From positions 186,001 through 250,000 of the forward strand of contig NIVC01000894.1 in assembly GCA_002269645.1 (NCBI GenBank): DNA of 64,000 bases. Direction: 5' to 3'. Both the position numbers and the translations under genes were made by a program. Numbering within the stretch: the stretch's first letter is position 1; the number at the start of each line of letters is the position of its first letter. Of the stretch, positions 11,017 to 56,034 are shown piece after piece. Below the pieces are notes generated by a model. That model did no database searches. It was not told the DNA's origin and saw only the letters and a list, made by a program, of their open reading frames with translations. This DNA is from Macrostomum lignano. Lineage: Eukaryota.

Positions 11017-14000
11017 ATGGGCAGTGAAGCCTCTAAGGAACAGGATAAGGTACCTTATTAAATTACTGTTTAGTTTTGATTAAAGTATTATATTTGTTTC
11101 TGTGTGTTAAAGCAGTAAATTAAATAAAATATTTTTTCTTTGTACTTACTTCCTCGTGTGCAGCGCGTGTGCCTCAGTTGTAGTTGCAGCAACTCACTCA
11201 CATGTTCGAATCTCCAGACTCTCGACCAGCTTGTCAGCCGAGGTGACTTCGGCCAGGTGCGGCGGCTGGCAACGCGCCAGCTGGTCACCAGCGCTGATGA
11301 AGCTCGTCGGACCGTCCTCATGCTGGTGGCCGACGCTTCTGAAACTCCCATGCACACTGAAAAGTGCATCTTGTACTTATTTGAGCTGGGCGCGAACCCC
11401 AAGGCGACTGACGCGAACGGCGACACGGCTGCGCACCTGGCAGCCCGGCGGGACCACCTGCGGCTGCTGACGCTGCTTTCGTTCGATGCGAAGTGGCTGC
11501 GGAACGACAACGGCGCCACTCCGCTGATGGAGGCGGCGCAGACTGGAAGCTGGAAATGCGCCAAGCACCTGCTGCACCTGCTCAGGCAGAAAAGTTTCAT
11601 TAAGTGTCTGGAGCATGGAAACTCGAAGAGGCTGCTCGAACTGAAGAATTCCGAGGGTCGGACGGCGTCGGACCTGGCGAAGCTCAGCGGCCACTCAGAG
11701 CTGGCCAGCTACATCGAGCGGTGAGTGAGCAGTTCGCTTCTGTGTCCATGCCTCCCAGCTAATGGGGTGGCGGTTGATCTTAGTTGCTGTTGCGCAGAAG
11801 CTGTAGGGCCTCGTATTGCAGTGAGAGTGTGTGGGTTGAGCTGCAGATGGAGAACTGGGAGGCTGTGCGTGAGTGCTTTGTGAGACATTGTGAGATGGAA
11901 GGAAACTCATGCTGCAGAAATTGAAAATGAGCTGCGTGTGAGAAGTCGGATGCGCTCTCGCCAATGCTGATTGTTGCAGAGCTGCTGCAGTCCTCTTCGA
12001 AACTGTCTGTGGGCAGCTCAGATAATTAAGAATTCATATACTAAAAATGGTTTGTCGGTAGGTGGGTAGGCAGGTAGGCATCCATGTGATCGATAAGAGA
12101 AAAAATTTTGTCCTGCAACTTCTTAAACTTTATTTTAGCAATCGTAATTGTCGTGTTTGAGACAACTGCGACATCGCTGCTCATTGTTGCTGTTGCAGGG
12201 AGATGCGGCTGGTTGTGGATGCACACGGCTATATCTCCGGCCTGACAGCCCAGGTGAGCGGCATCTGCGGTGCCGATGCGGCTGCAGCTGAGCAGCTGTG
12301 CTCAAATTTCCCGCTCGCCTTTGCAGGAGGAGGCGGATCGACAGGAGCTGCAGCGGCTGGCCAAGGCGGGCGACTCGGCGGGGCTGCGGCGAGCGGCGAC
12401 CTGCGGCAGCTGCGACCTGCCTGACGATGAGGGTCGCACCGCGTTGATGTGGGCAGCTCAAAGCAGCTCGTGCGGTGATGAGGCTCTGTGGGAGCAGCTG
12501 GTGCAGCTGGGTGACCCCACCTGTGCGGATAAATGTGCTGACAGTTGCCTGCACCATGCAGCCTTGGCTGGCAATTCTTCCGCAGCCTCCGCTCTGCTGG
12601 CTGCCGGAGCCTCCACCAATGCCAGGGGTCACTGGAAATTCACGGCCCTCATGGGGGCGGCCTTTGCGCACCCCGCCACCGCCGCCGCAGTCGGTCAGGT
12701 TCTGCTGAACTCAGGGGCGGATTGGAGCCTGAAGGACAGAAACGGCAGGACTGCGCTGGATTTGGCCACACAAAAGGGAAGGAGCGAACTGGCTGAGCTG
12801 CTGCGTGGGTGAGTTTCCATGGCGACTGAGAATGTCACTCTCACTTTGATTTATCATTGATAAACAATATGCTGTAATTTATGATTGAATATTGAATGAG
12901 TTTTGTAGTTTAAATGGAGTTTGCAGTGCAGTTTGACTGCAGATTGCAAGTTAAATGTTAATGTTCAGCTGCCTGCGAGCTGTGAGACACCAGCAAGAAG
13001 CATTGTGGTGTGGCATTTGAGCTCAAAATTATTAGGAATAGTTATTTTAATAAAAAACAATAAAAACTATATAATGAAGCACAGAGCATGGATGGACTCC
13101 TATCTGAATTTCCTGACTTAAGACTTTGCACTGCCCATTTAGGTACGACGACAAGATCTACTTCGATGAGCCTATGGCACTGCCGTGAGTTCCTTCAGCA
13201 CACAGCTACAGCACACAGCTACAGCACACAGCTACAGGACACAGCTACAGCACACAGCTACAGCACACAGCTACAGCACACAAAGCTACATCACACACAG
13301 CTACAGCACACAGCTACAGCACACACAGCTACAGCACACACAGCTACAGCACACAGCTACAGGACACAGCTACAGCACACAGCTACAGCACACAGCTACA
13401 GCACACACAGCTACAGCACACAGCTACAGCACACAAAGCTACATCACACACAGCTACAGCACACAGCTACAGCACACACAGCTACATCACACACAGCTAC
13501 AGCACACAGCTACAGCACACACAGCTACATCACACACAGCTACAGCACACAGCTACAGTACACAGCTACAGCACACAGCTACAGCACACACAGCTACAAC
13601 ACACAGCTACAGCACATAGCTAAAGCACACACAGCTACAGCACACACAGCTACATCACACAGCTACAGCACACAGCTACAGCACACACAGCTACAGCACA
13701 CACAGCTACAACACACAGCTACAGCACACACAGCTACAACACACAGCTACAGCACACAGCTACAGCACACACAGCTACAGCATGCAAATTATCCCTCATT
13801 GCTTCACTTCGCATCCTCTCAGTCCCGAAGGCCCCCCGTTCCGGGAGCGCTGGGACGCCGTTCGCCTCATCGGTCGCGGTGGCTTCGGCGAAGTCCACGA
13901 AGTTCGAACTGACACGGGCGTCACGTGCGCTGCCAAGACTCTTAAACTTCCTGTGCAGCTTGTTGATGAGCTGCCCTCTGTGAGCACAGAGATCCACAGA

Positions 14001-16101
14001 GCTGTCGAGAGCGAGAGAAACCTGTGCCGACTGCGGCATCCCAACATCGTCAGGTTCTTGCACATCGCTCAGCCGGAGCCCGCCACAGTCGTTGTGTTCA
14101 TGGAGCTGCTGGACGGCCGAAGCTTGGAGAGGTTTATCGACAACAGGCCACTGTACGAGCTGACGATTCGAGACTTCAGCGAGCAGGTGAGCATTGTGCA
14201 TCCTTGATGCTCCTGTTCCATGTTCTCATAAATGATGACTGCTCACTGACCGACCGCTCGCAGATCTGCCGCGCGCTGATCTACCTGCACAGCCGGCAGC
14301 CGCCCGTGATCCACAGAGACATCAACTGCTCGAACATAATTGTTTGTGCCGACAACACGCGAATCAAGCTGATCGACTTCGGCCTGTCAGTCAAGCTGGA
14401 GCAGTCAGTCAGCCACATCTCAGCCTCCAAAGCCACCCCGAAGGCACTCTTAACTTCTTGGCTCCGGAGCTGCTGGCACCGGAAGAGTCGGACAGCCCGC
14501 GGTACAGCAGAGAGTCGGACATCTGGGCGTTCGGCTGCTCGGTCTTCCAGATGGCCTCGGGCAGGCGGCCCTTCGCTGAGCACAAAATGCCCCAGACGCT
14601 GCCCGAGAAGCTGAGAAGCGGCGGTGCCCCCGCCCTGCTGACGGGCTGCTCTGCGGAGCTGCAGGACTTCTACAGCCGCTGCACCGCCATGGACCGAAAA
14701 AGCAGAAAGTCCGCACTGGAGCTGATGGGGCACGAGTTCCTCATCGTCAGGTACAAATGTACAGTAATTCGGCTAGACTTAGATACCTGTGCGATATGAT
14801 GCTGATGCAGAGGTGAGACCAATGTTGCACTTTTCATCAGTAGTCAAGCGGCCTCACCATGTGCTCACGCTAAAGTTGCACCGCATACTTTGAGCACTGA
14901 TCATTGAGGCGCCAGCTTGAAGCTCGGAGAAATATTGTGCTCAATTCCCTTCGATGAAGCAGAAGCCCTGATCAGACTTAAAAACAGTGCGAGCAATTTG
15001 CCGTGAATCTGTGAGAGCTGAGTTTTACTGGAATGAAATCCAATCAATTCCTTCAACTGCTGTGACTCCGCGCATCTCCTCATTTTAGCCTGTCTGTCAG
15101 GCGATGCCAAAATTCTGATCAGCGGCTTAACGCATCCTGACTCGCTTTCCACTTTTCCTAACAGCCCCGTTTTCAGGGAGAGTTGGGACTCCACTCGGTT
15201 CGTTGCAAGAGGATTCTTTGGTGACATTCAGGAAGTTGTCACTGACAGAGACATCAGGTGCGCTGCCAAGACTCTCAGACTGCCTGTGCAGCTCGGTGAT
15301 GACCAAACCTCTGTGAGCACAGAGATCCACAGAGCTGTCGAGAGCGAGAGAAACCTGTGCCGACTGCGGCATCCCAACATCGTCAGGTTCTTGCACATCG
15401 CTCAGCCGGAGCCCGCCACAGTCGTTGTGTTCATGGAGCTGCTGGACGGCCGAAGCTTGGAGAGGTTTATCGACAACAGGCCACTGTACGAGCTGACGAT
15501 TCGAGACTTCAGCGAGCAGGTGAGCATTGTGCATCCTTGATGCTCCTGTTCCATGTTCCCATGAATGATGCTGCTCACTGACCGACCGCTCGCAGATCTG
15601 CCGCGCGCTGCTCTACCTGCACAGCCGCAGCCGCCCGTGATCCACAGAGACATCAACTGCTCCAACATAATTGTTTGTGCTGACAACACGCGAATCAAGC
15701 TGATCGACTTCGGCCTGTCAATCAAGCTGGAGCAGATAGTCCGTCGCCACTCATCATTCCCGGAGGCATTGAAAGGCACTCTGAACTTCATGGCGCCAGA
15801 GCTGCTCGGAATCGGCACCTCGGAATGCGAGCAGTGCAGCAGAGAGTCGGACATCTGGGCGTTCGGCTGCTCGGTCTTCCAGATGGCCTCCGGTAACAAA
15901 CCATTCACCAGAGTCAAAAGCTTCTGGGAAATGGCCCAGCATCTTGACAGGAAGGGCGCCCCCGCCCTGCCGGACGGCCGGTCTGCGGAACTGAGGGATT
16001 TCTACAGCCGCTGCACCGCCAAGGACCGCAGGAGAAGAAGATCCGCACAGGAGCTGCTGAAGCACGAGTTCCTGGTGAAAAAGTCTGACTCGCAGCGCTA
16101 A
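11017..16101 (+). CDS. Ankyrin-repeat tandem-kinase gene, copy 1 (ANK-ANK-K1-K2; about 960 aa if two 1-nt deletions are corrected)
   Basis: Exons 11017-11049, 11164-11720, 12199-12253, 12327-12808, 13143-13184, 13823-14186, 14264-14750, 15165-15519, 15596-16101. All introns are GT-AG with matching phases (0,2,0,2,2,0,2,0). 1-nt deletions at about 14437 and 15627. Confidence 0.75.
11164..11720 (+). CDS. Copy 1 exon 2: ankyrin block A (about 4 repeats)
   Basis: [48 protein letters not shown]. Ends at the GAGCG|gtgagt donor. Confidence 0.88.
12327..12808 (+). CDS. Copy 1 exon 4: ankyrin block B (about 4 repeats)
   Basis: DDEGRTALMWAA, CLHHAALAGN...LLAAGASTNA, FTALMGAA...LLNSGADWSLKDRNGRTALDLA. 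Confidence 0.9.
13197..13781. repeat. Intronic (CACAGCTACAGCA)-type microsatellite, copy 1
   Basis: Lies between exon 5 and the first kinase exon. Confidence 0.95.
13823..14750 (+). pseudogene. Copy 1 kinase K1 (MEKK/STE11-like Ser/Thr kinase), frameshifted in the activation segment
   Basis: [26 protein letters not shown] and DFG are in one frame. [25 protein letters not shown] and HEFL are in the -1 frame after ACCCCGAAGGC (about 14437). Confidence 0.8.
15165..16101 (+). pseudogene. Copy 1 kinase K2 with a 1-nt deletion (mutation or sequencing error)
   Basis: ARGFFGDI, AAK, HRD, DFG, APE. Reads AGCCGCAG instead of AGCCGGCAG at about 15627. Acceptor tttccacttttcctaacag|. Confidence 0.78.
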
Positions 16102-21696: not shown

Positions 21697-22200
21697 CAGG
21701 GTTTAAAAACTTTTACCTGAAGTGCCCGATGGAGAATCTAGCGCATGCCTGCGGGCGGGAGAGAGGAGTGCATTAGGAGGAGAGATAAGAGGAGATAGGA
21801 GAGAAAAGAAGGGGAGAAGAGAAGATAAGGGAGAGGACAGGAGAGAAGGGAGAGGAGAGAGGAGAGGAGAGGAGAGAAGGGAGAGCAGAGAAGAGAAGGG
21901 AGATGAGAGAAGAGAAGAGAGACGGGACGAGAGAAGCGAAGGGGAGGAGAGAAAAGAAGGGAGAGGAAAGAAGGGAGATGAGAGAACGGAGAGGAAAGGA
22001 GAGGAGAGAAGAGATAGGAGAGTAGAGAAGAGATAGGAGAGTAGAATAAAGAAGGGAGAGAAGAGAGGGAGAGAGGAGGGAAGTAGAGAGAGAAAAGGGG
22101 GATGAGAGGATTAGAGAGGAGAGAGCTGAGAAGAGACACAAACCTTGAGCGGGCCGGAGTGTTATTGTGGGCCGGGTAGAGCGGCCTGTAGTTGCCCCTG
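21697..22200. mobile_element. hAT-like MITE with internal GA microsatellite
   Basis: CAGGG...CCCCTG termini and a degenerate 8-bp TSD (GTTTAGTG/AATTAGTG). Same flanks as 636-1301. Confidence 0.7.
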
Positions 22201-23863: not shown

Positions 23864-23864
23864 C

Positions 23865-24738: not shown

Positions 24739-27700
24739 ATGGCAGAGCGAGGGCGACTACCACCACCACCACCAGCATCACCACCACCATCACCACCAAT
24801 AAGACGACGAAGTTCACTAGGAGAGCCACCAAAGCCACCAAAGCCACCAAAGCCACCAAAGCCACCAAAGCCACCAAAGCCACCAAAGCCACCAAAGCCA
24901 CCAAAGCCACCAAAGCCACCAAGGCCACTACTTGACGAAGAAGTAAGTGACGTTAAAGTGACCAAATTAAAACACATTAATACCTGAAGGAGGTTCCACT
25001 GCAGTTGCAAAGACTCACTCACCTGTTTGAATGAGCAGCTTGGGTGCCTCAATTGCAGTTGCAGGAGCTCACTCAGCCGGACCCCACCAACCGGGCAAGC
25101 GTCAGATCCTCACCAGCCGATCTCCAGACTCTCGCCCACGACGTCATCCGAGGTGACTTCGACCAGGTGCGGCGGCTGGCAACGCTCCAGCTGGTCACCA
25201 GCGCTGATGCAGCTCGTCGGACCGTCCTCATGCTGGTGGCCGACGCTCCTGAGACTCCCGTGCACACTGAAAAGTGCATCTTGTACTTATTTGAGCTGGG
25301 CGCGAAACCCAAGGCGGCTGACGCGAACGGCGACACGGCTGCGCACCTGGCAGCCCGTCGGGACCACCTGCGGCTGCTGACGCTGCTGTCGTTCGATGCG
25401 AAGTGGCTGCGGAACGACGACGGCGCCACTCCGCTGATGGAGGCGGCGCGGACTGGAAGCTGGAAATGCGCCAAGCACCTGCTGCATCTGCTCAGGCAGA
25501 TAAGATTCAATGAGTTTTTTCAGCACGGAAACTCAAAGAGGTCGCTGCTGCTCGGACTGCAGGATCGCGAGGGTCGGACGGCGTCGGACCTGGCGAGTCG
25601 CAGTGGTCACTCAGAGCTGGCCAGCTACATCGAGCGGTGAGTGAGCAGTTCGCTGCTGTGTCCATCAAGTTTTGCAGCATTCGGCTGGGGTGGCCAGACC
25701 TGCAGTCTCAGGTCAGCCAATCAGAGCCAGTCAGCTGAGCTTGTCTCTGTCTGACTGCTTGATGGGCGACAGCTGTGATTGGCTGGCTGCCTCACAGCCA
25801 ATGGGGTGCCGGCTGATCTCAGTCGAGAGTGGAAACTGTAGGGACTGTGCGTACGTGCTTTTTTGGAGACATTGTGAGATGGAAGGAAACTCATGCTGCA
25901 GAAATGGAAAATGAGCTGCGTATGAGAAGTCGGATGCGCTCTCAATGCTGATTGTCGCAGAGCTGCTGCAGTTCTCTTGGAAACTCCATCTGCGAGCAGC
26001 TCAGATAGTTAGGAATTTATTCTGCTTACTAAATTTATCATAAATATTTATTTTGGCGATCGTAGTTGTCGGATTTGAGAAAATTGGAAATTCGCTGCTC
26101 ATTTTTGCTGTTGCAGGGAGATGTGGCTGCTTGTGGATGCATCTGGCAGGATCTCCGGTCTGACAGACCAGGTGAGCGGCATCTGCGGTGCCGATGCGGC
26201 TGCAGCTGAGCAGCTGTGCTCAAATTTCCCGCTCGCTTTTGCAGGAGGAGGCAGATCGACAGGAACTGCGGCGGCTGGCCAAGGCGGGCGACTCGGCGGG
26301 GCTGCGGCGAGCGGTGACCCGCGGCAGCTGCGACCTGCCTGACCATGAGGGTCGCACTGCGTTGACGTGGGCTGCTGAGAACAGCTCGTGCGGTGATGAG
26401 GCTCTGTGGGAGCAGCTGGTGCTGCTGGGTGACCCCACCTGTGCGACCATATGGGCTACAAGTTGCCTGCACTGGGCAGCCGAGGCTGGCAATTCTGCCG
26501 CATCCTCCGCTCTGCTGGCTTCCGGAGCCTCCGCCAATGCCAGGGGTCGGGCTGAATTCACGCCCCTCATGCTGGCAGCCATCATTGCGCCCCCCGACAC
26601 CGCCGCCGCAGTGGGTCGGGTTCTGCTGGACTCAGGGGCGGATTGGAACCTGAAGACCAGAGACGGCAGGACTGCGCTGTATTTGGCCACACAGAAGGGA
26701 AATATCGAACTGGCTGAGCTGCTGCGTGGGTGAGTTTCCATGGCGACTGAGAATGTCTCTCTGACTTTGATTTATCATTGATAAAATCATGCTGTACTTT
26801 ATGATTGAATATTGAGCAGCTGACTGCAGTTGCTCTGAGTGGGCATTTTAACATTTTTGTAGTTTAAATGGGCAGCAGACACTGACTGAGCTGCATTGAG
26901 GGAGTTTGCAGTGCAGTTTGACTGCAGATTGCCAGTTGAATATTAATGTTCAGCTGCCTGCGAGCTGTGAGACACCAGCAAACATTTTGCTGTGACAGTT
27001 GAGTTTAATTTCAACATCTGAAATTTTTTGTGCTTTTCTGCTAATATCATTTTTTACAATAAAACAAAAGTATTAATGAAATCTGTTTCATAGTTAATTA
27101 AAACAAAATGAAGAAATGAAGCACAGAGCATGGGCTCTCAACTGAATTCCCTCTTGACTTCAGACTCCGCACTGCCTATTTAGGTACGACGGCAAGATTT
27201 ACTTCGAGGAGTCTCTGGCACCGCCGTGAGTTCCTTCAGCACACACAGCTACAGCACACACAGCTACAGCACACAGCTACAGCACACACAGCTACAGCAC
27301 ACAGCTACAGCACACAGCTACAGCACACAGCTACAGCACACACAGCTACAGCACACACAGCTACAACACACAGCTACAGCACACAGCAACAGCACACAGC
27401 TACAGCACAGACAGCTACAGCATGCAAATTATCCCTCATTGCTTCAATTCGCATTCCCTCAGACCCGAAGGTCCTCCGTTCCTGAAGCGCTGGGACGCCG
27501 TTCGCCTCATCGGCCGAGGAGGCTTCGGCGAAGTCCAGGAAGTTCGAACTGACACGGGCGTCACGTGCGCTGCCAAGACTCTCAGACTGCCTGTGCAGCT
27601 CGGTGATGACCAAACCTCTGTGAGCACAGAGATCCACAGAGCTGTCGAGAGCGAGAGAAACCTGTGCCGACTGCAGCATCCCAACATCGTCAGATTCTTG

Positions 27701-37869: not shown

Positions 37870-40170
37870 AAAGGATAGAAGGATGGGAGGAGAGGGGAGA
37901 TAGGGAAGGGAGGAGAAGGGAGATAGGGAAGGGAGGAGAGGGGAGATGGGGAAGGGAGGAGAGGGGAGATGGGGAAGGGAGGAGAGTGCAGATGGGGAAG
38001 GGAGGAGAAAGAAGATAGGGAAGGGAGGAGAGGGAAGATAGGGAAGGGAGGAGAGGGAAGATAGGGAAGGGAGGAGAGGGAAGATAGGGAAGGGAGGAGA
38101 GGGAAGATAGGGAAGGGAGGAGAGGGAAGATAGGGAAGGGAGGAGAGGGAAGATAGGGAAGGGAGGAGAGGGAAGATAGGGTAGGGAGGAGAGGGGAGAT
38201 GGGGAAGGGAGGAGAGGGGAGATGGGGAAGGGAGGAGAGTGGAGATGGGGAAGGGAGGAGAGGGAAGATAGGGAAGGGAGGAGAGGGGAGATGGGGAAGG
38301 GAGGAGAGGGAAGATAGGGAAGGGAGGAGAGGGGAGATGGGGAAGGGAGGAGAGGGAAGATAGGGAAGGGAGGAGAGGGGAGATAGGGAAGGGAGGAGAG
38401 GGGAGATAGGGAAGGGAGGAGAGGGGAGATAGGGAAGGGAGGAGAGGGAAGATAGGGTAGGGAGGAGAGGGGAGATGGGGAAGGGAGGAGAGGGAAGATA
38501 GGGAAGGGAGGAGAGGGAAGATAGGGAAGGGAGGAGAGGGAAGATAGGGAAGGGAGGAGAGGGAAGATAGGGAAGGGAGGAGAGGGGAGATAGGGAAGGG
38601 AGGAGAGGGAAGATAGGGTAGGGAGGAGAGGGGAGATGGGGAAGGGAGGAGAGGGAAGATAGGGAAGGGAGGAGAGGGAAGATAGGGTAGGGAGGAGAGG
38701 GGAGATGGGGAAGGGAGGAGAGGGGAGATGGGGAAGGGAGGAGAGTGGAGATGGGGAAGGGAGGAGAGGGGAGATGGGGAAGGGAGGAGAGGGGAGATAG
38801 GGAAGGGAGGAGAGTGGAGATGGGGAAGGGAGGAGAGGGAAGATAGGGAAGGGAGGAGAGGGAAGATAGGGAAGGGAGGAGAGGGAAGATAGGGTAGGGA
38901 GGAGAGGGGAGATAGGGAAGGGAGGAGAGGGAAGATAGGGTGGGGAGGAGAGGGGAGATGGGGAAGGGAGGAGAGGGGAGATGGGGAAGGGAGGAGAGTG
39001 GAGATGGGGAAGGGAGGAGAGGGGAGATGGGGAAGGGAGGAGAGGGGAGATAGGGAAGGGAGGAGAGTGGAGATGGGGAAGGGAGGAGAGGGAAGATAGG
39101 GAAGGGAGGAGAGGGAAGATAGGGAAGGGAGGAGAGGGGAGATAGGGAAGGGAGGAGAGGGGAGATAGGGAAGGGAGGAGAGGGAAGATAGGGAAGGGAG
39201 GAGAGGGAAGATAGGGTAGGGAGGAGAGGGGAGATGGGGAAGGGAGGAGAGGGGAGATGGGGAAGGGAGGAGAGTGGAGATGGGGAAGGGAGGAGAGGGG
39301 AGATGGGGAAGGGAGGAGAGGGGAGATAGGGAAGGGAGGAGAGGGGAGATAGGGAAGGGAGGAGAGGGAAGATAGAGAAGGGAGGAGAGGGGAGATAGGG
39401 AAGGGAGGAGAGGGAAGATAGGGAAGGGAGGAGAAGGGAGATAGGGAAGGGAGGAGAGGGGAGATGGGGAAGGGAGGAGAGGGGAGATGGGGAAGGGAGG
39501 AGAGTGGAGATGGGGAAGGGAGGAGAGGGAAGATAGAGAAGGGAGGAGAGGGGAGATAGGGAAGGGAGGAGAGGGAAGATAGGGAAGGGAGGAGAAGGGA
39601 GATAGGGAAGGGAGGAGAGGGGAGATGGGGAAGGGAGGAGAGGGGAGATGGGGAAGGGAGGAGAGTGGAGATGGGGAAGGGAGGAGAGGGAAGATAGGGA
39701 AGGGAGGAGAGGGAAGATAGGGAAGGGAGGAGAGGGGAGATAGGGAAGGGAGGAGAGGGGAGATAGGGAAGGGAGGAGAGGGAAGATAGGGAAGGGAGGA
39801 GAGGGATGATAGGGTAGGGAGGAGAGGGGAGATGGGGAAGGGAGGAGAGGGGAGATGGGGAAGGGAGGAGAGTGGAGATGGGGAAGGGAGGAGAGGGGAG
39901 ATAGGGAAGGGAGGAGAGGGGAGATGGGGAAGGGAGGAGAGTGGAGATAGGGAAAGAGGAGAGGGGAGATAGGGATGGGAGGAGAGGGGAGATGGGGAAG
40001 GGAGGAGAGGGGAGATGGGGAAGGGAGGAGAGTGGAGATGGGGAAGGGAGGAGAGGGAAGATAGGGAAGGGAGGAGAGGGGAGATGGGGAAGGGAGGAGA
40101 GGGAAGATAGGGAAGGGAGGAGAGGGAAGATAGGGAAGGGAGGAGAGTGGAGATGGGGAAGGGAGGAGGG
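37870..40170. repeat. 2.3-kb polypurine minisatellite, about 23-bp unit (TAGGGAAGGGAGGAGAGGGGAGA)
   Basis: Read directly. The 804-aa minus-strand ORF is an artefact. Confidence 0.97.
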
Positions 40171-41014: not shown

Positions 41015-43853
41015 ATGGCAGAGCGAGGGCCAAAAGCCTTGCTTAATAAGTTAATAAGAAGAAAAAAGAAACCATTTCTCTTTTCTGATGAAAAAGTAAG
41101 TAAAAATGCCTTAAATAAATATGCCTTGGGCTTGATTGCATTTTGCAGGAACTCACTCACATGTTTGAATGTGCAGCTTGGGTGCCTCAATTGCAGTTGC
41201 AGGAACTCACTCAGCCGGACCCCTGCAACCAAGCAGGCGTCGGAGGCTCACCAGCCGATCTCCAGACTCTCGCTCATGACGTCATCCAAGGTGACTTCGG
41301 CCAGGTGCGGCGGCTGGCAACGCGCCAGCTGGTCACCAGCGCTGATGCAGCTCGTGGGACCGTCCTCATGCTGGTGGCCGACGCTCCTGAAACTCCCGTG
41401 CACACTGAAAAGTGCATCTTGTACTTATTTGAGCTAGGCGCGAACCCCAAGGCGGCTGACGCGAACGGCGACACGGCTGCGCACCTGGCAGCCCGGCGGG
41501 ACCACTTGCGGCTGCTGACGCTGCTGTCGTTCGATGCGAAGTGGCTGCGGAACGACAACGGCGCCACTCCGCTGATGGAGGCGGCGCGGACTGGAAGCTG
41601 GAAATGCGCCAAGCACCTGCTGCACCTGCTCAGACAATGGAGGTTCAATGAGTGCTTTGAGCACGGAAACTCGAAGAGGACTCGGCTGCTCGGACTGAAG
41701 GATCGCAAGGGTCGGACGGCGTCGGACCTGGCGATGCGCAGTGGTCACTCAGAGCTGGCCAGCTACATCGAGCGGTGAGTGAGCAGTCAGCTGAGCTTGT
41801 CTCTGTCTCTGACTGCTTATAGACGAGAGCTGTGATTGGCTGGCTGCCTCCCAGCCAATGGGGTGCCGGTTAATCTCAGTCGAAAATGGAAGCTGTAGGG
41901 CCTCGGTGTGCAGTGGGAGTGTGTGGGTTGAGCTGCAGATGGAGAACTGGGAGGCTGCAGTGCGTGAGTGCTTTCTGTGCCATTGTGAAATGGAAAGAAA
42001 CTCATGCGGAAGAAATGAAAAATGAGCTGCGTGTGAGAAGTCGGATGCGCTCTCGCCAATGCTGATTGTTGCAGAGCAGCTGCAGTCCTCTTGGAAACTC
42101 CATCTGCGAGCAGCTCAGATAACTAGGAATTTCTGTCTACTGAATTTAGTACGAAAATTGAAGCAGATCAAAGAGATTTAATCGTACAAGATAATTTTAT
42201 TTTGGCCATGGTAATTGTCTGATTTGAGAAAACTGCAAATTGGCTGCTCATTTTTGCTGTTGCAGGGAGATGCGGCTGGTCGTAGATGCACTCGGCGAGA
42301 TTTCCGGCCTGACAGCCCAGGTGAGCGGCATCTGAGGTGCCGATGCGGCTGCAGCTGAGCAGCTGTGCTCAAATTTCCCGCTCGCCTTTGCAGGATCAGG
42401 CGGATCGACAGGAACTGCAGCGGCTGGCCAAAGCGGGCGACTCGGCGGGGCTGCGGCGAGCGGCGACCCGCGGCAGCTGCGACCTGCCTGATCATGAGGG
42501 TCAAACCGCGTTGATGTGGGCAGCTCAGAACAGCTCGTGCGGTGATGAGGCTTTGTGGGAGCAGCTGGTGCAGCTGGGTGACCCCACATGTGCGACTATA
42601 TTAGCTGAAAGTTGCCTGCACCGTGCAGCCAAGGCAGGCAATTCTGCCTCAGCCTCCGCTCTGCTGGCTGCCAGAGCCTCCGCCAATGCCAGGGAAGATT
42701 GGAGTGAATCCACGCCCCTCATGCTGGCAGCCATCAATGCGCCCCTCGCCAGCGCCGCCGCAGTCGGTCAGGTTCTGCTGGACTCAGGGGCGGATTGGAG
42801 CCTGAAGGACATGCGGGGCAGGACTGCGCTGGATTTGGCCACACAGCACGGAAAGAGCGAACTGGCTGAGCTGCTGCGTGGGTGAGTTTCCATGGCGACT
42901 GAGAATGTCTCTCCGACTTTGATTTATCATTGATAAACATTATGCTGTAATTTATGATTGAATATTGAGCAGCTGACTGCAGTTGCTCTGAGTGGGCATT
43001 TTTACATTTTTGTAGTTTAAATGGGCAGCAGGGACTGACTGAGCTGCATTGAGGGAGTTTGCAGTGCAGTTTGACTGCAGATTGCCAGTTGAATGTTAAT
43101 GTTCAGCTGCCTGCGAGCTGTGAGACACCAGCAAGCATTTTGCTGAGTCAGAAATCAGAAAAAAAGTAAGAGCTTAGAAAGAATGATGTTGGCAAGAAAT
43201 TTTGCAAAAATTATAGTAATTCTTTGAATGCTAGCTAGATGTATAGAACATATACGGTCAACTTTCTTTCAGATTTGAAGGAGTGATCTACTTCGATGAG
43301 TCCCTGTGAGTTTGCTACAGCACACACAGCTACAGCACACACAGCTACAGCACACACATCTACAGCACACACAGCTACAGCACACACACCTACAGCACAC
43401 AGCTACAGCACACAGCTACAGCACACAGCTACAGCACACAGCTACAGCACACAGCTACAGCACACATAGCTACAGCACACAGCTACAGCACACAGCTACA
43501 GCACACACAGCTACAGCACACACAGCTACACCACACACAGCTACAGCACACACAGCTACAGCACACACAGCTACAGCACACACAGCTACAGCACACAGCT
43601 ACAGCACACACAGCTACACCACACACAGCTACACCACACACAGCTACAGCACACACAGCTACAGCACACACAGCTACACCACACACAGCTACACCACACA
43701 CAGCTACAGCACACAGCTACAGCACACAGCTACAACACACACAGCTACAGCACACAGCTACAGCACACAGCTACAGCACTCAGCTACAGCACACAGCTAC
43801 AGCACTCAGCTACAGCACACAGCACGGAGCACGAGTTCCTGACGCGCGGGTAG
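41015..43853 (+). CDS. Ankyrin-only paralogue, copy 3 (kinase deleted; about 420-437 aa)
   Basis: Exons 41015-41095, 41149(or 41203)-41774, 42266-42320, 42394-42881, 43273-43305 and a speculative 43823-43853. The microsatellite abuts GAGCACGAGTTCCTGACG, the last codons of the kinase. Confidence 0.72.
41149..41774 (+). CDS. Copy 3 exon 2: ankyrin block A
   Basis: Ankyrin motifs as in the other copies; open frame. Confidence 0.88.
42394..42881 (+). CDS. Copy 3 exon 4: ankyrin block B
   Basis: GQTALMWAA, CLHRAAKAGN, STPLMLAA, KDMRGRTALDLA. Confidence 0.9.
43315..43822. repeat. CACAGCTACAG-type microsatellite, copy 3 (at the kinase deletion breakpoint)
   Basis: Read directly from the sequence. 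Confidence 0.94.
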
Positions 43854-47762: not shown

Positions 47763-48129
47763 TGCGTTTGGGGTTGCCGGAAAGTCATTAATTTTTCTTG
47801 CAGACGTACCTGGAGTTGGGGAAAAACAAGCTCAACTCGCGGTAGCTGTAAGACTGTGTGCGAGCCTGTATGGAACTTCTGAATTATTTGCCCGTTAGTT
47901 CTTTTCAGTTCTTCAAGCAGTGTGCATTTACAAAACGCTTCAATTTATCAAGACTTTCATCTTTGATCTACTTCTGGTTGAAAACATACAGCTAAATGCT
48001 CACTATGCTTAGAATAAAGATGTTTCCAGACTCCTTCATAAGCAGCTGACCAATCATTATGCTGCAGCTATCTGCCGATAGTCTAAAACATTACAGTGGG
48101 AAGAGAAAAGCTCACAGAGCACGAAATTA

Positions 48130-49719
48130 CCGTAAGATGACCCACTTACTAATTACTACATATGAGGCGAAACAGCGCGATTAGGCTTCCTGCCCCTATT
48201 GCAATCCAATGCTAAAAACAGAAAGGCGTTAGTCTTGAGGCTGCGCCCATCTTTCGCCAGCGGTAGAAAAGCTCGCGAGAGAGGCAACCGCGATCTTCAT
48301 CCGGCCGGTGTCCCGGACGAATGCGCGTTAGTCACGGATCCGGTCCGGGGTGGTCAGCTCGTCCAACCTTAGCAGCAGGTAGCTGAGCTGGTGTCTCCGC
48401 GCTACGTTGAAGTGCAGGCAGGAGGCGTCGCGTGATGCGCCACAGTTTCCTACTCCAAGTCACAAAAGGCGAATGGGGGAGCAGCTAATTTGCATTCAAA
48501 AATGTCTTTGGAAGAAGCCATGGCCAGTAATGACAATGCACATCTCACTGAGGTCAGTTTTACTCAAGGAGATTAGGCATTCAGATACTTTCCAGTTAAT
48601 TGGAGGCATCGCATCGCACGTTTGTTGATATTCGGAGCAGCCTCTCCAGTGCAGCGGGTGTTGGTGGCTGCTGAAGCATTTGCGAATGGCGCGGTTGACG
48701 GATGACTTCGGGGTAGACAGCTCGACCGAGTGCTGCGCTCCACCCAGGGTGCTGTCTCGCTTGGCGAGTGGATCCACCATCTCGTTGCCAAGGATATCGC
48801 TGTGGCCTGGTGTCCAGATCACGTTGATTCTATTGAGAATCGCTGCAAGCTTTTGCAAGCTTTTGAAACAAGGCGAAACTGACTTGGCTGATAGCTTGAT
48901 GGAAGACAAGGACTTTATAGCGGCCTGGTAGTCAGAGTAGAAACTGTGTCAAAGTTTGTGCAGCTGCTTAGTACATTGGTTGACGGTTGATGGATTGAAA
49001 ATCGATATATATATACATTAATTTATAAAGGCTCTCTTGCAGGATCGCCTCACCGGTGTGGAAAACGGATGTGCCGGCTCCAGCCAGGCCATCGCACAGG
49101 GATCCGTCAGTGAAGCAGTGGATGCCCTGACTCCATCGGTTGACGCCCGCGTCTAGTGGTAGCGATCTCGCGGCTGAATGGTTCACTTGAATTCCTTCCT
49201 GATGAGTTAAGGAATGGCACCTCGACAAGGTTGAGGTGGATGTGTTGTAGACTGCGACGTATATACGCGCTATTCCTTGTGCGGAATGAGCGTCCTCTCA
49301 GGCGTGAAGCCCGAGGGGAATTTAATAATAAATCTATCCCAGATTAAACGCGTGGCAGCTTGAATCGTCTCAGTTTCGATAGCCAGGTGCAGCGGAGGCA
49401 TGTTGAGGATGCTTTTGAAGAGAGAGAGAGAGAGAGAGAGAAAGCCCCTCTTAGAGGTTAGAGGGGTACCCTGCAGCTGGTACAGCCGTTTTAATCTCTA
49501 GCGCACTGGACCAAATCAAACACGTGTAGGTGATGCTGGTTCAGATGATTCCCGTGTAGATCCACCGGATGTCTTGGGAGAGAGCCCTCAGGTATGGCTC
49601 TTTTTACTTGTGCGAAACATTTTTTAGCGTGCACGATGACGCTGTCAACATTTTTGCTTCGAAGCATATACCATACGTGAGCGTTGCACCTTTTGTTACC
49701 TTGACTATGGGGTTGCCTT
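48130..49719 (-). mobile_element. Degenerate RNase H-containing non-LTR retrotransposon (I/LOA/R1-group-like): RT C-terminus, RNase H, Cys-His tail
   Basis: CFTDGS (48968-49228 ORF); [24 protein letters not shown]...[13 protein letters not shown] (48496-48909); GLSPK..RWIYTGII fragments near 49560-49600. Many stops and frameshifts. Confidence 0.85.
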
Positions 49720-51058: not shown

Positions 51059-51063
51059 GTATA

Positions 51064-51277: not shown

Positions 51278-51725
51278 TTCGTTTATTAAGTTCTTAGGTT
51301 CGTTCATTAAGTGTTCAGGTTTGTTCATCAAGTGCTCAGGATGGTTCATCAAGTGTTCAGGTTTGTTCATTTAGTGTTCAGACTTGTTCATTAAGTGCTC
51401 AGGTTTGTTTATCAAGTGCTCAGGTTTGTTCATCAAGTGCTCAGGATGGTTCATCAAGTGTTCAGGTTTGTTCATTAAGTGTTCAGACTTGTTCATCAAG
51501 TGCTCAGGATGGTTCATCAAGTGTTCAGGTTTGTTCATTTAGTGTTCAGACTTGTTCATTAAGTGCTCAGGTTTGTTTATCAAGTGCTCAGGTTTGTTCA
51601 TCAAGTGCTCAGGATGGTTCATCAAGTGTTCAGGTTTGTTCATTAAGTGTTCAGACTTGTTCATTAAGTGCTCAGGTTTGTTCATTAAGTGATCAGGTTT
51701 GTTTATCAAGTGCTCAGGTTTGTTT
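51278..51725. repeat. 21-bp minisatellite (CAGGTTTGTTCATCAAGTGCT)n
   Basis: Read directly from the sequence. Confidence 0.94.
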
Positions 51726-52842: not shown

Positions 52843-55800
52843 ATGGCAGAGCAAGTGCCAACATCATTTCCTGGTGAAAAAGTAAGTAAAGTTAAAGTGA
52901 GACATTTAACAATCTGTAGGCTCGATTGCAGTTGCACGAACTCGAACTCACAATTTCATTCGTATGTTTGAATACGAGTATGCAGCTTGGGTGCCTCAAT
53001 TGCAGTTGCAGGAACTCACTCAGCCGGACCCCAGAGACCGGGCAAGCGTCGGATCCTCACCAGCCGATCTCCAGACTCTCGCCCACGACGTCATCCGAGG
53101 TGACTTCGGCCAGGTGCGGCGGCTGGCAACGCGCCAGCTGGTCACCAGCGCTGATGCAGCTCGTCGGACCGTCCTCATGCTGGTGGCCGACGCTCCTGAG
53201 ACTACCGTGCAGACTGAAAAGTGCATCTTGTACTTATTTGAGCTGGGCGCGAACCCCAAGGCGGCTGACGCGAACGGCGACACGGCTGCGCACCTGGCAG
53301 CCCGGCGGGACCACCTGCGGCTGCTGACGCTGCTGTCGTTCGATGCGAAGTGGCTGCGGAACGACAACGGCGCCACTCCGCTGATGGAGGCGGCGCGGAC
53401 TGGAAGCTGGAAATGCACCAAGCACCTGCTGCACCTGCTCAGGCAGAAAAAGTTCAATGAGTACAACAAGCACGGAAACTTGAAGAGGTCGCGGCTGCTC
53501 GGACTGGAGGATCGCGAGGGTCGGACGGCGTCGGACCTGGCGAGGCTCAGCGGCCACTCAGAGCTGGCCAGCTACATCGAGCGGTGAGTGAGCAGTTCGC
53601 TGCAGTGTCTGTCTGATCGTATTTGTCCGTTTTGAGAAAATTGCAAAATCGCTGCTCATTTTTGCTGTTGCAGGGAGATGCGGCTGGTTGTTGTTGGTAA
53701 ATATGGCACAATCTCCGGCCTGACAGCCCAGGTGAGCGGCATCTGCGGTGCCGATGCGGCTACAGCTGAGCAGCTGTGCTCAAATTTCCCGCTCGCCTTT
53801 GCAGGAGGAGGCGGATCGACAGGAGCTGCAGCGGCTGGCCGAGGTGGGCAACTCAGCGGGGCTGCGGCGAACGGCGACCCGCGGCAGCTGCGACCTGCCT
53901 GACGAATGGGGTCGCACCGCGTTGATGTGGGCAGCTCGGAACAGCTCGTGCAGTGATGAGGCTCTGTGGGAGCAGCTGGTACAGCTGGGTGACCCCACCT
54001 GTGCGACTATATCCGCTGCCGAATATATGACTACCAGTTGCCTGCACCATGCATCCGATGCTGGCAATTCTGCCGCAGCCTCCGCTCTGCTGGCTGCCGG
54101 AGCCTCCGCCAATTCCAGGAATTGCTGGGAGTTCACGCCCATCATGGAGACAGCCGATGCGCCCCCCACCTCCGCCGCCGCAGTCGGTCGGGTTCTGCTG
54201 GACTCAGGGGCGGATTGGAGCCTGAAGGACTGTCAGGGCAGAACTGCGCTGGATTTAGCCACGGACAATGGAAGCGGCGAACTGGCTGAGCTGCTGCGTG
54301 GGTGAGTTTCCTGAGAACGTCTCTTTGATTTAGATTTATCATTTATGAACGTTATGCTATAATTTATGATTGAATATTGAGCAGCGGACTGTAGTTTCTC
54401 TGAGTGGGCATTTTTACATTTTGTAGTTTAAATGGGCAGCAGGGACTGACTGAGCTGCATTGAGGGAATGCCGTGCTGTTTGACTGCAGATTTCTAGTAG
54501 AATATTAATTTTCAGCTGCCTGCGAGCTGAGAGACACCTGTTTGAACAATATAGCAAATAATATTAAGGAGCTCAGAGCATAGGCTCTCCCATCAGAATT
54601 CCCTTAACTTCAGACTTTGCATTGCATATTTAGGTACGACGGCAAGATTTACTTCGACGAGCCTCTGGCACTGTCGTGAGTTCCTTCAGCACACACAGCT
54701 ACAGCCTACAGCCACAGCACACACAGCTACGGCACACACAGCTACAGCACACACAGCTACAGCACACAGCTACAGCACACACAGCTACAGCACACAGCTA
54801 CAGCACACACAGCTACAGCACACAGCTACAGCACACACAGCTACAGCACACACAGCTACAGCATACAGCTACAGCACACAGCTACAGCGCACACAGCTAC
54901 AGCACACACAGCTACAGCACACAGCTACAGCACACACAGCTACAGCACACACAACTACAGCACACTTAGCTGCAGCACACAGCTACAGCACACAGCTACA
55001 ACTCACAGCTACAGTATGCAAATTATCCCTCATTGCCTCAATTCGCGTTTCCTCAGACCCAAAGGCCCCCCGTTCCGGGAGCGCTGGGACGCCGTTCGCC
55101 TCATCGGCCGCGGAGGCTTCGGCGAAGTCCACGAAGTTCGAACTGACACGGGCGTCACGTGCGCTGCCAATACTCTCAGACTGCCTGTGCAGCTCGGTGA
55201 TGAGTTACCCTCTGTAAGCACAGAGATCCACAGAGCTGTCGAGAGCGAGAGAAACCTGTGCCGACTGCGGCATCCCAACATCGTCAGGTTCTTGCACATC
55301 GCTCAGCCGGAGCCCGCCACAGTCGTTGTGTTCATGGAGCTGCTGGACGGCCGAAGCTTGGAGAGGTTTATCGACAACAAGCCGCTGGACGAGCCAAAGA
55401 TTCGAGACTTCAACAAGCAGGTGAGCATTGTGCATCCTTGATGCTCCTGTTCCATGTTCTCATGAATGATGACTGCTCACTGACCGACCGCTCGCAGATC
55501 TGCCGCGCGCTGCTCTACCTGCACAGCCGGCAGCCGCCCGTGATCTACAGAGACATCAACTGCTCGAACATAATTGTTTGTGCCGACAACACGCGAATCA
55601 AGCTGATCGACTTCGGTCTGTCAATCAAGCTGTCAGTCAGCCACTTCTCAGCCTCCACTCAGTCACCCAAAGGCACTCTGAACTTCATGGCGCCAGAGCT
55701 GCTCGGAGCGGGAGAGTCGGACAGCGTGCAGTACAGCAGAGAGTCGGACATCTGGGCGTTCGGCTGCTCGGTCTTCCAGATGGCGTCCGGCTCGAGGCCG

Positions 55801-56034
55801 TTCGCGAACACCAAAAGCCTGTTAGAAATGACCCAGCTGATCGACAGGAGGGGCGCCCCCGCCCTGCCGGACGGCCGGTCCGCAGAGCTGAGGGATTTCT
55901 ACAGCCGCTGCACCGCCAAGAACCACAAAAGAAGAAGATCCGCACAGGAGCTGCTCGAGCACGAGTTCCTGACGGGCGGGAGCTGCAGCTGGGATTCTTC
56001 ATCTCGTTGGTGGTTTATTAGATCATTCATTTAG
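52843..56034 (+). CDS. Ankyrin-repeat (pseudo)kinase, copy 4: intact 702-aa ORF with a single kinase domain
   Basis: Exons 52843-52881, 53012-53583, 53674-53731, 53805-54301, 54634-54675, 55057-55420, 55498-56034 sum to 2109 nt (703 codons including the stop), all GT-AG. The beta3 Lys is replaced by Asn (CAANT) and HRD reads YRD. Confidence 0.85.
53012..53583 (+). CDS. Copy 4 exon 2: ankyrin block A
   Basis: Ankyrin motifs; open frame. Confidence 0.88.
53805..54301 (+). CDS. Copy 4 exon 4: ankyrin block B
   Basis: GRTALMWAA, CLHHASDAGN, FTPIMETA, KDCQGRTALDLA. Confidence 0.9.
54688..55014. repeat. Intronic CACAGCTACAG-type microsatellite, copy 4
   Basis: Read directly from the sequence. 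Confidence 0.94.
55057..56034 (+). CDS. Copy 4 kinase domain (MEKK/STE11-like, predicted pseudokinase), 2 exons
   Basis: [12 protein letters not shown] (Lys lost), [40 protein letters not shown]. Confidence 0.85.

Follow-up and report, generated by a model that had tools for sequence, protein, structure and literature searches.

A tandem array of young ankyrin–kinase paralogues in Macrostomum lignano, a candidate intracellular sensor family

Gene models of the array

The window analysed is a 64-kb stretch of the Macrostomum lignano contig NIVC01000894.1, and all coordinates refer to it. Self-BLASTN of the window returned four head-to-tail paralogous units at 85–95% DNA identity, all on the + strand, starting where the initial annotation had placed them: 11017 (P1), 24739 (P2), 41015 (P3) and 52843 (P4). 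The paralogues are young (dS ~0.07–0.15). Exon models were built independently of the GenBank annotation and then compared with the GenBank products; M. lignano gene annotation is derived purely from RNA-seq and transcripts (PMC5730564). All exons of P1–P4 were joined via GT-AG introns with consistent phases, and the translation of the P4 model was identical to the RNA-seq-derived BOX15_Mlig017273g1 (P0008); the separate reading frames are thus exons of single genes, as had been proposed. Each gene runs from a variable first exon through two five-repeat ankyrin clusters, separated by a micro-exon of 55–58 nt that would form a short β-hairpin, to a linker micro-exon (42 nt, 33 nt in P3) and then to any kinase cassettes. 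This order is the one first described, from which both micro-exons were missing. P1 and P2 have two kinase cassettes each, P3 none and P4 one, a pseudokinase that has lost its β3 Lys and HRD His, which bears out the three architectures reported.

P1 (11017–16101, +; ANK(5+5)-linker-K1-K2) is frameshifted as assembled. Its exons were modelled at 11017–11049 (first exon, predicted, as is its acceptor), 11164–11720 (cluster 1), 12199–12253 (micro-exon), 12327–12808 (cluster 2), 13143–13184 (linker), 13823–14186 and 14264–14750 (K1), and 15165–15519 and 15596–16101 (K2). The predicted first exon encodes MGSEASK, which we take to be compatible with the N-myristoylation consensus. P2 (24739–29758, +) has the same layout, with K1 broken twice and K2 intact, in exons 24739–24942, 25059–25636 (cluster 1), 26117–26171, 26245–26729 (cluster 2), 27184–27225 (linker), 27463–27825 and 27902–28388 (K1), and 28818–29175 and 29252–29758 (K2).

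P3 (41015–43309, +) is ankyrin-only and encodes 412 aa in exons 41015–41095, 41197–41774 (cluster 1), 42266–42320, 42394–42881 (cluster 2) and 43273–43305 (the shortened linker), with read-through to a TGA at 43307–43309. GenBank calls a 412-residue ankyrin-only gene directly upstream of P4, in agreement with P3 by length, position and domains; an ankyrin-only gene in this place has transcript support. Self-BLASTN homology of P3 to the other units extends to ~43145 and resumes at 44306 with the sequence found downstream of the kinase genes; a homology search of the window found no kinase homology in between. P4 (52843–56034, +; ANK(5+5)-linker-pseudokinase, 704 aa) has exons 52843–52881, 53006–53583 (cluster 1), 53674–53731, 53805–54301 (cluster 2), 54634–54675 (linker), and 55057–55420 and 55498–56034 (kinase).

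The 42-nt linker exon (YDDKIYFDEPMAL in P1, YDGKIYFDEP) was also found in many paralogue models besides P0008, caspase-bearing ones included. A CAGCACACAGCTA minisatellite lies in the intron between the linker exon and K1 of P1 (13196–13782, +) and at the equivalent position in P3 (43314–43821) and P4 (54687–55014), as located with TRF; open reading frames at ~27230–27440 in P2 derive from the same repeat. Rfam and tRNA scans of the 64-kb window gave no matches.

Kinase cassettes, splicing and frameshifts

The kinase cassettes are phase-symmetric (2/2) exon units, and those of the window genes match Pfam Pkinase (E 8.6e-45). Each is divided by an intron on the + strand, 77 nt long in P1 K1 (14187–14263), with counterparts at 15520–15595, 27826–27901, 29176–29251 and 55421–55497. 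The intron reads GTGAGC...CTGAC...(C/T)AG, interrupts FSEQ|ICRAL and shows 93–99% identity in every pairing of cassettes, evidence of gene conversion. The cassettes are mosaic, with core and intron homogenised. K1 3' ends carry a splice donor and no stop codon, and the K1-type 3' and K2-type 5' ends are kept in P1, P2 and another locus.

Joining of two kinases was seen in the transcript-derived models P0001, P0171 and P0167. BOX15_Mlig034440g1 (P0001, 985 aa) is an intact ANK-kinase-kinase paralogue elsewhere in the genome, and its kinase–kinase junction (...EFFIV|SPVFRDSWD) falls exactly where the predicted phases place it. The proposed ANK-to-K1-to-K2 splicing is thereby backed by this paralogue rather than by the window genes: the phases of P1 and P2 permit K1–K2 joining, but both genes are frameshifted as assembled. 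Mlig002250 and Mlig009993 are further M. lignano ANK+2-kinase genes. K1 and K2 might instead be alternative cassettes, one per mRNA, with mature proteins that are single-kinase ANK-kinases. A phase-symmetric cassette can be skipped in frame, and omitting K1 from P2 leaves an intact ANK+kinase open reading frame of 742 aa; a single kinase is by a wide margin the most frequent architecture in the family, and the P0001 model takes only two of the three genomic cassettes at the Mlig034440 locus. We nevertheless hold this to be improbable, as each of the three transcript-derived models joins two kinases, K1 lacks its own stop codon, and the K1-type 3' and K2-type 5' ends are conserved under purifying selection.

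In the assembly, the reading frames of P1 and P2 are both interrupted. The exon cassettes of two ANK-K1-K2 genes stand as first annotated, but their reading frames do not: four 1-nt deletions hit three of the four kinase cassettes (P2 K2 is intact). A −1 frameshift in a C4 run of the K1 activation loop is common to P1 (14436–14439) and P2 (28074–28077); C5 in place of C4 at the P1 site would restore a 17-residue kinase stretch. The alignment placed the other two deletions, likewise on the + strand, in the N-lobe of P2 K1 (27767–27768) and immediately before HRD in P1 K2 (GG to G, 15626–15627). The earliest in-frame stops are at 14612 in P1 and 27800 in P2. With 1-nt corrections, each gene reads through ~570 codons without a stop, at a dN/dS of 0.26 (K1) and 0.37 (K2). 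In the codons 3' of the common K1 frameshift, 8 synonymous and 7 non-synonymous changes give a dN/dS of 0.25 when the kinase frame is read, vs 4.4 for the assembled frame. Because of these values and the lack of stops after correction, the common frameshift is probably a homopolymer assembly error, and the P1 and P2 lesions would mostly be PacBio consensus errors, not decay.

Four independent deletions across three quarters of the cassettes also fit a history in which P1 and P2 became pseudogenes recently through real frameshifts, only P3 and P4 are functional, and the tandem kinases here are relics of birth and death. Protein searches gave no match to P1 or P2, while both P3 and P4 coincide in position with called genes, and the ML2-based prediction P0013 needed frame jumps at the same places. 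We regard this history as somewhat unlikely. ML2 and Mlig_3_7 were built from the same PacBio reads and are therefore not independent. A common frameshift would be older than the P1/P2 split, yet the kinase-frame dN/dS downstream of it is low, and the corrected genes are free of stops. Each of the four lesions removes a single base from a short run, an error profile that characterises PacBio CLR consensus in paralogous regions, which Pilon polishes poorly. Mlig_3_7 is a Canu/PacBio assembly with Pilon polishing, and transcripts overlapping repeats were left out of the GenBank submission (PMC5730564). For users of Mlig_3_7, these sites are flagged as four likely consensus errors, and P1 and P2 as two apparently unannotated genes.

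P4 is a pseudokinase. Its β3 Lys is replaced by Asn (CAANTL; codon AAT, 55169–55171, +) and its HRD His by Tyr (YRD; codon TAC, 55546–55548, +). It is the sole member among 43 clusters scanned to lack one of the VAIK Lys, HRD Asp and DFG Asp; all the remaining family kinases in the scan read CAAK or nearly so. An origin of the P4 kinase as a K1/K2 deletion chimera was rejected, its 3' end being 75% identical to K1 and 76–80% to K2. The P4 kinase agrees with the widespread single-kinase type, probably the ancestral one.

In P1 and P2, both kinases retain the VAIK Lys, HRD Asp and DFG Asp, in the motifs CAAK or CTAK, HRD and DFG. In all window-type kinases the catalytic loop reads HRDINCSN, with Asn in place of the catalytic-loop Lys, and catalytic output is therefore uncertain. 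The domains could be non-catalytic scaffolds, pseudokinases in practice, with output by conformational change or oligomerisation instead of phosphorylation. The Lys-to-Asn change is family-wide (HRDINCxN), related Mlig002250 kinases retaining HRDIKCSN; the K2 glycine loop is ARGxFG, further catalytic residues are gone from P4 and from K2 of P0167, and QACRG is replaced by QAGRG or HTLAN in some caspase partners. However, even paralogues ~45% identical overall (52–56% in the kinase) keep the β3 Lys, HRD Asp, Asn at +5, DFG and APE without exception. Together with the low dN/dS, which shows purifying selection on the kinases, this argues for retained nucleotide binding or catalysis, and we consider a scaffold-only role rather unlikely. 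AlphaFold2 models of the P4 kinase and of P2 K2 (7-sequence alignment) had pLDDT mostly <60, and no structural conclusion was drawn from them.

The ankyrin module and a proposed sensor role

The ankyrin module matches Pfam Ank_2, Ank and Ank_4 and consists of tandem 33-residue helix-turn-helix repeats. AlphaFold2 predicted ten helix-pair repeats (5+5) with pLDDT >90; the two blocks first annotated are upheld, and their count of about eight repeats becomes ten. Cluster 1 (repeats 1–5) is nearly invariant in the paralogue alignment, with a mean entropy of 0.34 bits and dN/dS of 0.50–0.78 among P2–P4. Cluster 2 (repeats 6–10) is hypervariable, with dN/dS of 1.05–1.92 in all six pairs of P1–P4. 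Among 16 paralogues, its entropy is 2.21 bits at the canonical binding positions 2, 3, 5, 13 and 14 vs 0.62 elsewhere (p=2e-9). When dN/dS was partitioned, omega was not >1 at the canonical binding codons (pN 0.42 and pS 0.47, vs 0.080 and 0.069 elsewhere), and positive selection is therefore not claimed as proven. High turnover at these codons could come from patchy gene conversion or multi-hit saturation, and a whole-exon omega of ~1 in cluster 2 is equally expected under relaxed constraint. Hypervariability at the predicted binding surface fits a sensor role.

The family comprises ~100 M. lignano protein clusters; in these the ankyrin module either stands alone or is followed by one to three kinases or by a caspase. 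ANK-caspase and ANK-kinase-caspase architectures are present in M. lignano, and at one locus (L002) a caspase domain lies directly upstream of a tandem-kinase gene. The window genes carry no C-terminal Peptidase_C14 domain, and no caspase homology was found within the 64-kb window. Outside Macrostomum, protein and sequence database searches gave nothing closer than generic ankyrin or kinase matches, and the multigene family appears, on these searches, to be Macrostomum-restricted. ENA/Logan short contigs with ankyrin modules 55–70% identical were set aside as single-exon genomic fragments that hold no splicing evidence. Multi-kinase proteins of birds, oomycetes, fungi and amoebae ranked high in HMMER because their scores sum several domains, and were not accepted as close relatives. 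The lineage-specific, birth-and-death character first suggested is sustained: the family evolves by birth and death, as seen in cassette numbers of 0–3, absence of the kinase block from P3, the P4 pseudokinase and gene conversion.

That no described family has this architecture holds for the literature, in which we found no paper on an ANK-kinase family; six Mlig gene IDs were absent from full-text literature and from the searched supplements of M. lignano papers. It does not hold for databases, where ANK+2-kinase M. lignano models are already deposited as hypothetical proteins, nor for the caspase-bearing branch, already noted with an M. lignano 'kinase pro-domain caspase' (Genome Biol Evol 2024, PMC11463336).

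We read the window, with a probability of roughly 0.55, as an array of young paralogues in a Macrostomum-restricted, cytosolic, modular family that combines a variable ankyrin surface with exchangeable effector cassettes and acts as an intracellular sensor/adaptor. Each gene comprises, in this order, a variable N-terminal exon, the near-invariant cluster 1, the β-hairpin micro-exon, the hypervariable cluster 2, the linker and an exchangeable C-terminal effector, the slot holding zero to two STE-group-like kinases in the window and up to three kinases, or a caspase, elsewhere. Cluster 2 would be a ligand-recognition surface diversifying under conflict, and the kinase(s) or caspase would turn binding into output. 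Immunity or cell death is the most plausible setting. Members that are ankyrin-only or carry a pseudokinase may compete without signalling themselves. An immune or sensor function is plausible; specific roles in immunity or allorecognition, and as decoys or executors, we purely infer.

Tandem expansion, lineage restriction and elevated dN/dS are no less characteristic of genes for reproduction, and M. lignano is a sexual-conflict model. A family serving reproduction or sexual conflict, in germline, sperm or prostate, was nonetheless judged unlikely: this ankyrin module also occurs fused to caspases, and ANK-prodomain caspases are considered possible initiator caspases in those flatworms that have lost the DED/FADD pathway (PMC11463336). 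Going beyond the sensor/adaptor reading, Macrostomum might, after loss of the DED-caspase/FADD extrinsic pathway, have evolved its own intracellular recognition, with cluster 2 acting like the LRRs of NLRs, exchangeable tandem-kinase or caspase cassettes giving the signalling or executioner output, and ankyrin-only, pseudokinase and pseudocaspase members as decoys or regulators. We give this proposal little credence; if true, this animal lineage would have arrived independently at a functional counterpart of plant tandem-kinase/NLR immunity. Among invertebrates, receptors for immunity and cell death are often restricted to one lineage, and those of flatworms are poorly known. A diversifying ankyrin surface, a plug-in effector slot and tandem-array dynamics together make a concrete candidate for a flatworm-specific sensing system. 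RNAi is routine in M. lignano. Transgenesis is also established (PMC5730564).

Comparison with known systems

The best sequence and profile matches of the kinases are STE-group kinases (TNIK/MAP4K, PAK, SLK, MAP3K2/5) and WNK, over the full catalytic domain at E 4e-34 to 1e-30. A profile search of the PDB gave TNIK (4.1e-34), WNK1 (1.7e-33), MAP3K2 (3.1e-33), MAP3K5 (~9e-33) and PAK1 (8e-32), with SLK also matched; the closest non-Macrostomum kinase match is a plant NPK1-type MAP3K (33% identity). Judged from these matches, the kinases are STE-group-like in general, with the non-STE WNK1 equally close. The MEKK/STE11 affinity first assigned survives at the level of the group, but these matches favour no one subfamily, STE20-type TNIK and WNK1 scoring at least as well as MAP3K2/5. 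Similarity to these kinases is modest, and the catalytic-loop Lys-to-Asn change sets the M. lignano kinases apart.

ILK, TNNI3K, RIPK4/ANKK1 and DAPK1 likewise combine ankyrin repeats with one kinase or pseudokinase in one protein. ILK and TNNI3K have the ANK-then-kinase order of the M. lignano genes, and ILK is a pseudokinase, as is P4. None of them was among the best 60 PDB matches in sequence and profile searches, matches that gave no sign of ILK/TNNI3K-type (TKL group) kinase orthology. They are TKL or CAMK-type, single-kinase and conserved single-copy proteins, unlike the hypervariable tandem arrays described here. The best fold matches of the ankyrin module (Foldseek, E ~1e-15) were two-module DARPin fusions and tankyrase ARC clusters, which share five-repeat clusters arranged as two modules; the positions randomised in DARPins are those that vary in cluster 2. 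At 24–26% identity, this is structural analogy only.

Closest to home are the M. lignano ANK-caspases P0023 and P0026, with an ankyrin module 80–84% identical in cluster 1 and the same linker exon, and P0027, an ANK-kinase-caspase. Platyhelminth ANK-caspases differ from the window genes, which have no caspase domain; they were reported as limited to parasitic flatworms, in a study in which the kinase-only and tandem-kinase branch is not described (PMC11463336).

Plant tandem kinase proteins (Rpg1, Yr15/WTK1, WTK3/Rwt4, Sr62-TK) share with the M. lignano family, in its transcript-derived models P0001, P0171 and P0167, at least two kinase or pseudokinase domains in one cytosolic polypeptide, and more generally a multigene and fast-evolving nature, and kinase+pseudokinase members (K2 of P0167 reads HRN/GFG). 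In plants, one kinase domain or an integrated domain binds effectors; in M. lignano, recognition would most likely reside in the N-terminal ankyrin module. Plant tandem kinases are RLK/Pelle-derived, whereas the PDB matches of the M. lignano kinases are STE-group-like and give no indication of RLK/Pelle descent. Plant tandem kinases give resistance to specific pathogens by recognising effectors, often with an NLR as helper; we know of no NLR partner for the M. lignano family. The resemblance first noted therefore extends to architecture and not to kinase lineage, and is analogy, not homology. Duplication of phase-symmetric exon cassettes gives rise to tandem-kinase architectures time and again, and these are therefore not peculiar to cereals.

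Gene structure and layout of the array

Self-BLASTN of the window resolved four head-to-tail units, 85–95% identical, and exon models were built from reading frames, canonical splice sites and alignments across paralogues. Both agreed with the starts given in the initial annotation for the four + strand genes, 11017 (P1), 24739 (P2), 41015 (P3) and 52843 (P4). The rebuilt models also returned its three architectures: an ankyrin module followed by two kinase cassettes (K1 and K2) in P1 and P2, ankyrin only in P3, and ankyrin plus pseudokinase in P4. The proposal that the separate reading frames form single spliced genes was correct, but two micro-exons had been overlooked.

Each model begins with a variable first exon, wholly different in sequence between paralogues; that of P2 carries a CCACCAAAG microsatellite within coding sequence (24826-24924), giving a (PPK)n tract of ~11 units. 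The first exons of P1 (MGSEASK) and of an ankyrin-caspase protein, P0023 (MGSAASS), may fit an N-myristoylation consensus. Ankyrin repeats 1–5 (cluster 1) are encoded by one exon of 557–578 nt and repeats 6–10 (cluster 2) by one exon of 482–497 nt (12327-12808 in P1, 26245-26729 in P2, 42394-42881 in P3 and 53805-54301 in P4), with a micro-exon of 55–58 nt between them. The linker exon is 42 nt long (YDGKIYFDEP), or 33 nt in P3, where read-through past it into a TGA gives a 412-aa product. A kinase cassette consists of two exons separated by a 76–77-nt intron at FSEQ|ICRAL, and is in phase 2 at both entry and exit, so that the frame is kept however many cassettes there are.

The translated P4 model matched GenBank BOX15_Mlig017273g1 (P0008, 704 aa; annotated on NIVC01000894.1, assembly Mlig_3_7, GCA_002269645.1) exactly, and the position of P4 there places the window at about 186001-250000 of the contig. 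An ankyrin-only gene annotated just upstream of P4 has the same size as the P3 model, a match of size, position and domains. Mlig_3_7 is a Canu assembly of PacBio reads with Pilon polishing; RNA-seq and transcript assemblies (StringTie/TACO, TransDecoder) were the sole source of its GenBank annotation, and repeat-overlapping transcripts were taken out before submission (PMC5730564).

Matching pairs of flanks were found beyond the genes (16356-17034/56293-56964, 18684-19572/46004-46971, 20664-23023/34605-37088 and 24474-24754/40742-41030; self-BLASTN). The duplicated sequence includes several kb downstream of the genes as well as the upstream/5' region, and thus an entire unit of ~12–16 kb was duplicated. 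No additional family copy was found within window positions 1-11000, where two unrelated, housekeeping-type ORFs on the - strand, one with a NUDIX hydrolase domain (26-526, Pfam E 1.6e-18), the other for a prefoldin subunit (2116-2574, Pfam E 8.6e-23), mark the edge of the array.

A 23-nt purine-only minisatellite, GGAAGGGAGGAGAGGGGAGATAG, extends for 99.5 copies (2.3 kb) at 37881-40168, with a GC skew of 1.0 and an AT skew of 0.73; shorter purine-rich, repeat-like stretches with GE/R-rich ORFs lie at 21700-22100 and 35650-36100 and are absent from the TRF output. At 9143-9633, 10411-10696 and 32208-33791 the genes are flanked by similar minisatellites of a 13-nt unit (CTATCTGGATGTT / ATTCTATCTGCAT), with as many as 122 copies, which create long spurious ORFs in every frame. 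A degenerate RNase H-like ORF runs along the - strand of a ~1.07-kb repeat found at 47995-49065 and 62943-64000 (84% identical); its Pfam E values, 6e-4 and 1e-3, fall short of the gathering score, and the repeat is probably a retrotransposon fragment. A CAGCACACAGCTA-type minisatellite was detected by TRF in the intron from the linker exon to the first kinase exon at 13196-13782 (P1) and 54687-55014 (P4), and at 43314-43821 in P3; P2 has the same repeat-derived ORFs at about 27230-27440. In P3 this minisatellite lies directly 3' of the linker exon with no kinase exons after it, and so may mark the breakpoint of their deletion.

Kinase cassettes and the frameshifts in P1 and P2

Sequence and profile matches in the PDB (TNIK, WNK1, MAP3K2, MAP3K5, PAK1 and SLK, E 1e-34 to 1e-30) place the kinase domain as STE-group-like, with no subfamily assigned. 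The original MEKK/STE11-like label is right in part, with MAP3K2 and MAP3K5 among the best matches, but TNIK, WNK1, PAK1 and SLK rank there too. The beta-3 Lys, the HRD Asp, the Asn at +5, DFG and APE are conserved family-wide, and the catalytic-loop Lys is replaced by Asn (HRDINCSN) in every window-type member. P4 additionally has beta-3 Lys to Asn and HRD His to Tyr, and counts as a pseudokinase by the standard criterion, as first proposed.

Tandem cassettes were also found elsewhere in M. lignano. The transcript-derived protein P0001 (BOX15_Mlig034440g1, 985 aa) is an ankyrin protein with two kinases whose junction, ...EFFIV|SPVFRDSWD..., equals that predicted by the window splice phases. 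Its locus (L002, 20065-23671) holds three complete, intact cassettes, two of which are used in the GenBank model; either a cassette is skipped or near-identical cassettes were collapsed by short-read transcript assembly. P0002, an ab initio model from an older assembly, joins three kinases in series. When the kinase profile was used in an exhaustive HMMER scan, further M. lignano ankyrin genes with two kinases were recovered, among them Mlig002250g1/2/4/5, in which the ankyrin array is long and canonical, with eight Pfam Ank_2 matches, and both kinases have the canonical HRDIKCSN, and Mlig009993g1, in which the second kinase is degenerate (HRN, GFG). Multi-kinase proteins of other eukaryotes were rejected as close relatives, their high HMMER rank being a sum over several domains. 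Judged by sequence, tandem kinases are real within the M. lignano ankyrin-kinase family.

K1-type cassettes diverge from K2-type ones by ~30% both at the 5' end, from the glycine loop to beta-3, and at the 3' end, from the activation loop to alpha-I; the core, intron included, is shared with 94–96% identity in every pair. The cassettes are mosaics, and the homogeneous core and intron indicate gene conversion. In P4 and other single-kinase genes a K1-type 5' end is joined to a terminal-type 3' end, from which a single cassette is probably ancestral, and the cassette duplication probably old yet continually homogenised.

As assembled, the reading frames of P1 and P2 are interrupted. Alignment of the five kinase cassettes located four single-base deletions: in a C-run of the K1 activation loop in both genes (14436-14439 and 28074-28077), in the K1 N-lobe of P2 (27767/8) and immediately before HRD in K2 of P1 (15626/7). 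Literal translation stops at 14612 in P1 and 27800 in P2. K2 of P2 is the only intact cassette of the two genes, and P2 without K1 is an open 742-aa ankyrin-kinase. Adding one base per lesion left zero stop codons in any cassette, and dN/dS between the corrected P1 and P2 was 0.26 for K1 and 0.37 for K2. All four lesions lie within short runs; where paralogous sequence is assembled from PacBio CLR reads, single-base deletions of this kind are the usual error left in the consensus. P0013, an older ML2-based prediction, switches frame at the same sites, and the same PacBio reads underlie ML2 and Mlig_3_7. Genuine frameshifts with very recent decay would fit the protein searches, which returned no protein corresponding to P1 or P2, but the frameshift common to both genes would then have to be older than their duplication, and the 103 codons 3' of it are constrained in the kinase frame (8 synonymous, 7 non-synonymous, dN/dS 0.25) and not in the assembled frame (1 synonymous, 12 non-synonymous, dN/dS 4.4). 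Given the absence of stops after correction, the low kinase-frame dN/dS and the PacBio-type lesions, assembly error is the more likely explanation, at least at the common C-run.

The ankyrin module

The AlphaFold2 model contained ten ankyrin helix pairs (5+5) with pLDDT above 90, so that the earlier figure of about eight repeats was an undercount; the micro-exon folded as a beta-hairpin between the two clusters. The best fold matches were two-module DARPin fusions and tankyrase ARC clusters.

In a set of 16 paralogues, cluster 1 hardly varies, at 0.34 bits per column. Cluster 2 gave dN/dS of 1.05–1.92 in 6/6 window pairs, and variability in repeats 7–10 was concentrated at the canonical target-binding positions 2, 3, 5, 13 and 14 (2.21 bits vs 0.62 elsewhere; Mann-Whitney p=2e-9). 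Synonymous as well as non-synonymous change was raised at the 23 canonical binding codons (pS 0.47 vs 0.069 elsewhere); each class was five to six times as frequent as elsewhere, with an omega of 0.89. The raised pS could come from multi-nucleotide codon replacement, micro-gene-conversion from diverged paralogues or multiple-hit saturation. Since both classes are raised and saturation or patchy gene conversion could contribute, cluster 2 is described as predicted binding-surface hypervariability, with positive selection unproven.

Family distribution and possible role

Protein searches returned ~100 M. lignano protein clusters with the window-type ankyrin module; beyond Macrostomum they returned a few short contigs of unidentified samples and then generic ankyrin proteins, in keeping with the lineage-specific family first proposed. 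One kinase per ankyrin module is the commonest architecture; others have two or three kinases or ankyrin only. About ten clusters combine ankyrin with a caspase, P0027 has ankyrin, kinase and caspase, and P0030 fuses a different ankyrin array to the same kinase type. At L002 the start of the tandem-kinase gene is preceded, at a distance of ~7 kb, by a caspase domain (1986-2928). Among the ankyrin-caspase paralogues examined (P0026, P0042 and P0027), some are without the catalytic cysteine (QAGRG, HTLAN) and others retain QACRG; degenerate effectors are thus present in both branches of the family.

Flatworm 'ANK caspases' had been described in 2024, in a survey of apoptosis genes across Lophotrochozoa (PMC11463336), which stated that they are confined to parasitic flatworms and also reported one M. 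lignano caspase whose pro-domain is a kinase; the ten or so clusters above come from a free-living species. The literature search found nothing on the kinase-only branch. The ankyrin-kinase family is undescribed, its gene models having been deposited as 'hypothetical proteins'.

The array is genuine, and its first interpretation plausible but supported in part. The family is lineage-restricted, tandemly arrayed and modular: one ankyrin cluster is hypervariable, the kinase cassettes are constrained, and their number varies. Cluster 2 would bind diverse ligands, kinases or caspases would serve as outputs, and ankyrin-only and degenerate members would be competitors. Platyhelminths have lost DED-caspase signalling (PMC11463336), and with the tie to caspases in such a phylum the most attractive of the plausible roles lies in immunity or cell death; reproductive conflict is a possible alternative. 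Searches of M. lignano papers returned no expression or functional data on the family, which is experimentally tractable. What these genes share with plant tandem kinases is architecture, and perhaps logic, but not descent.
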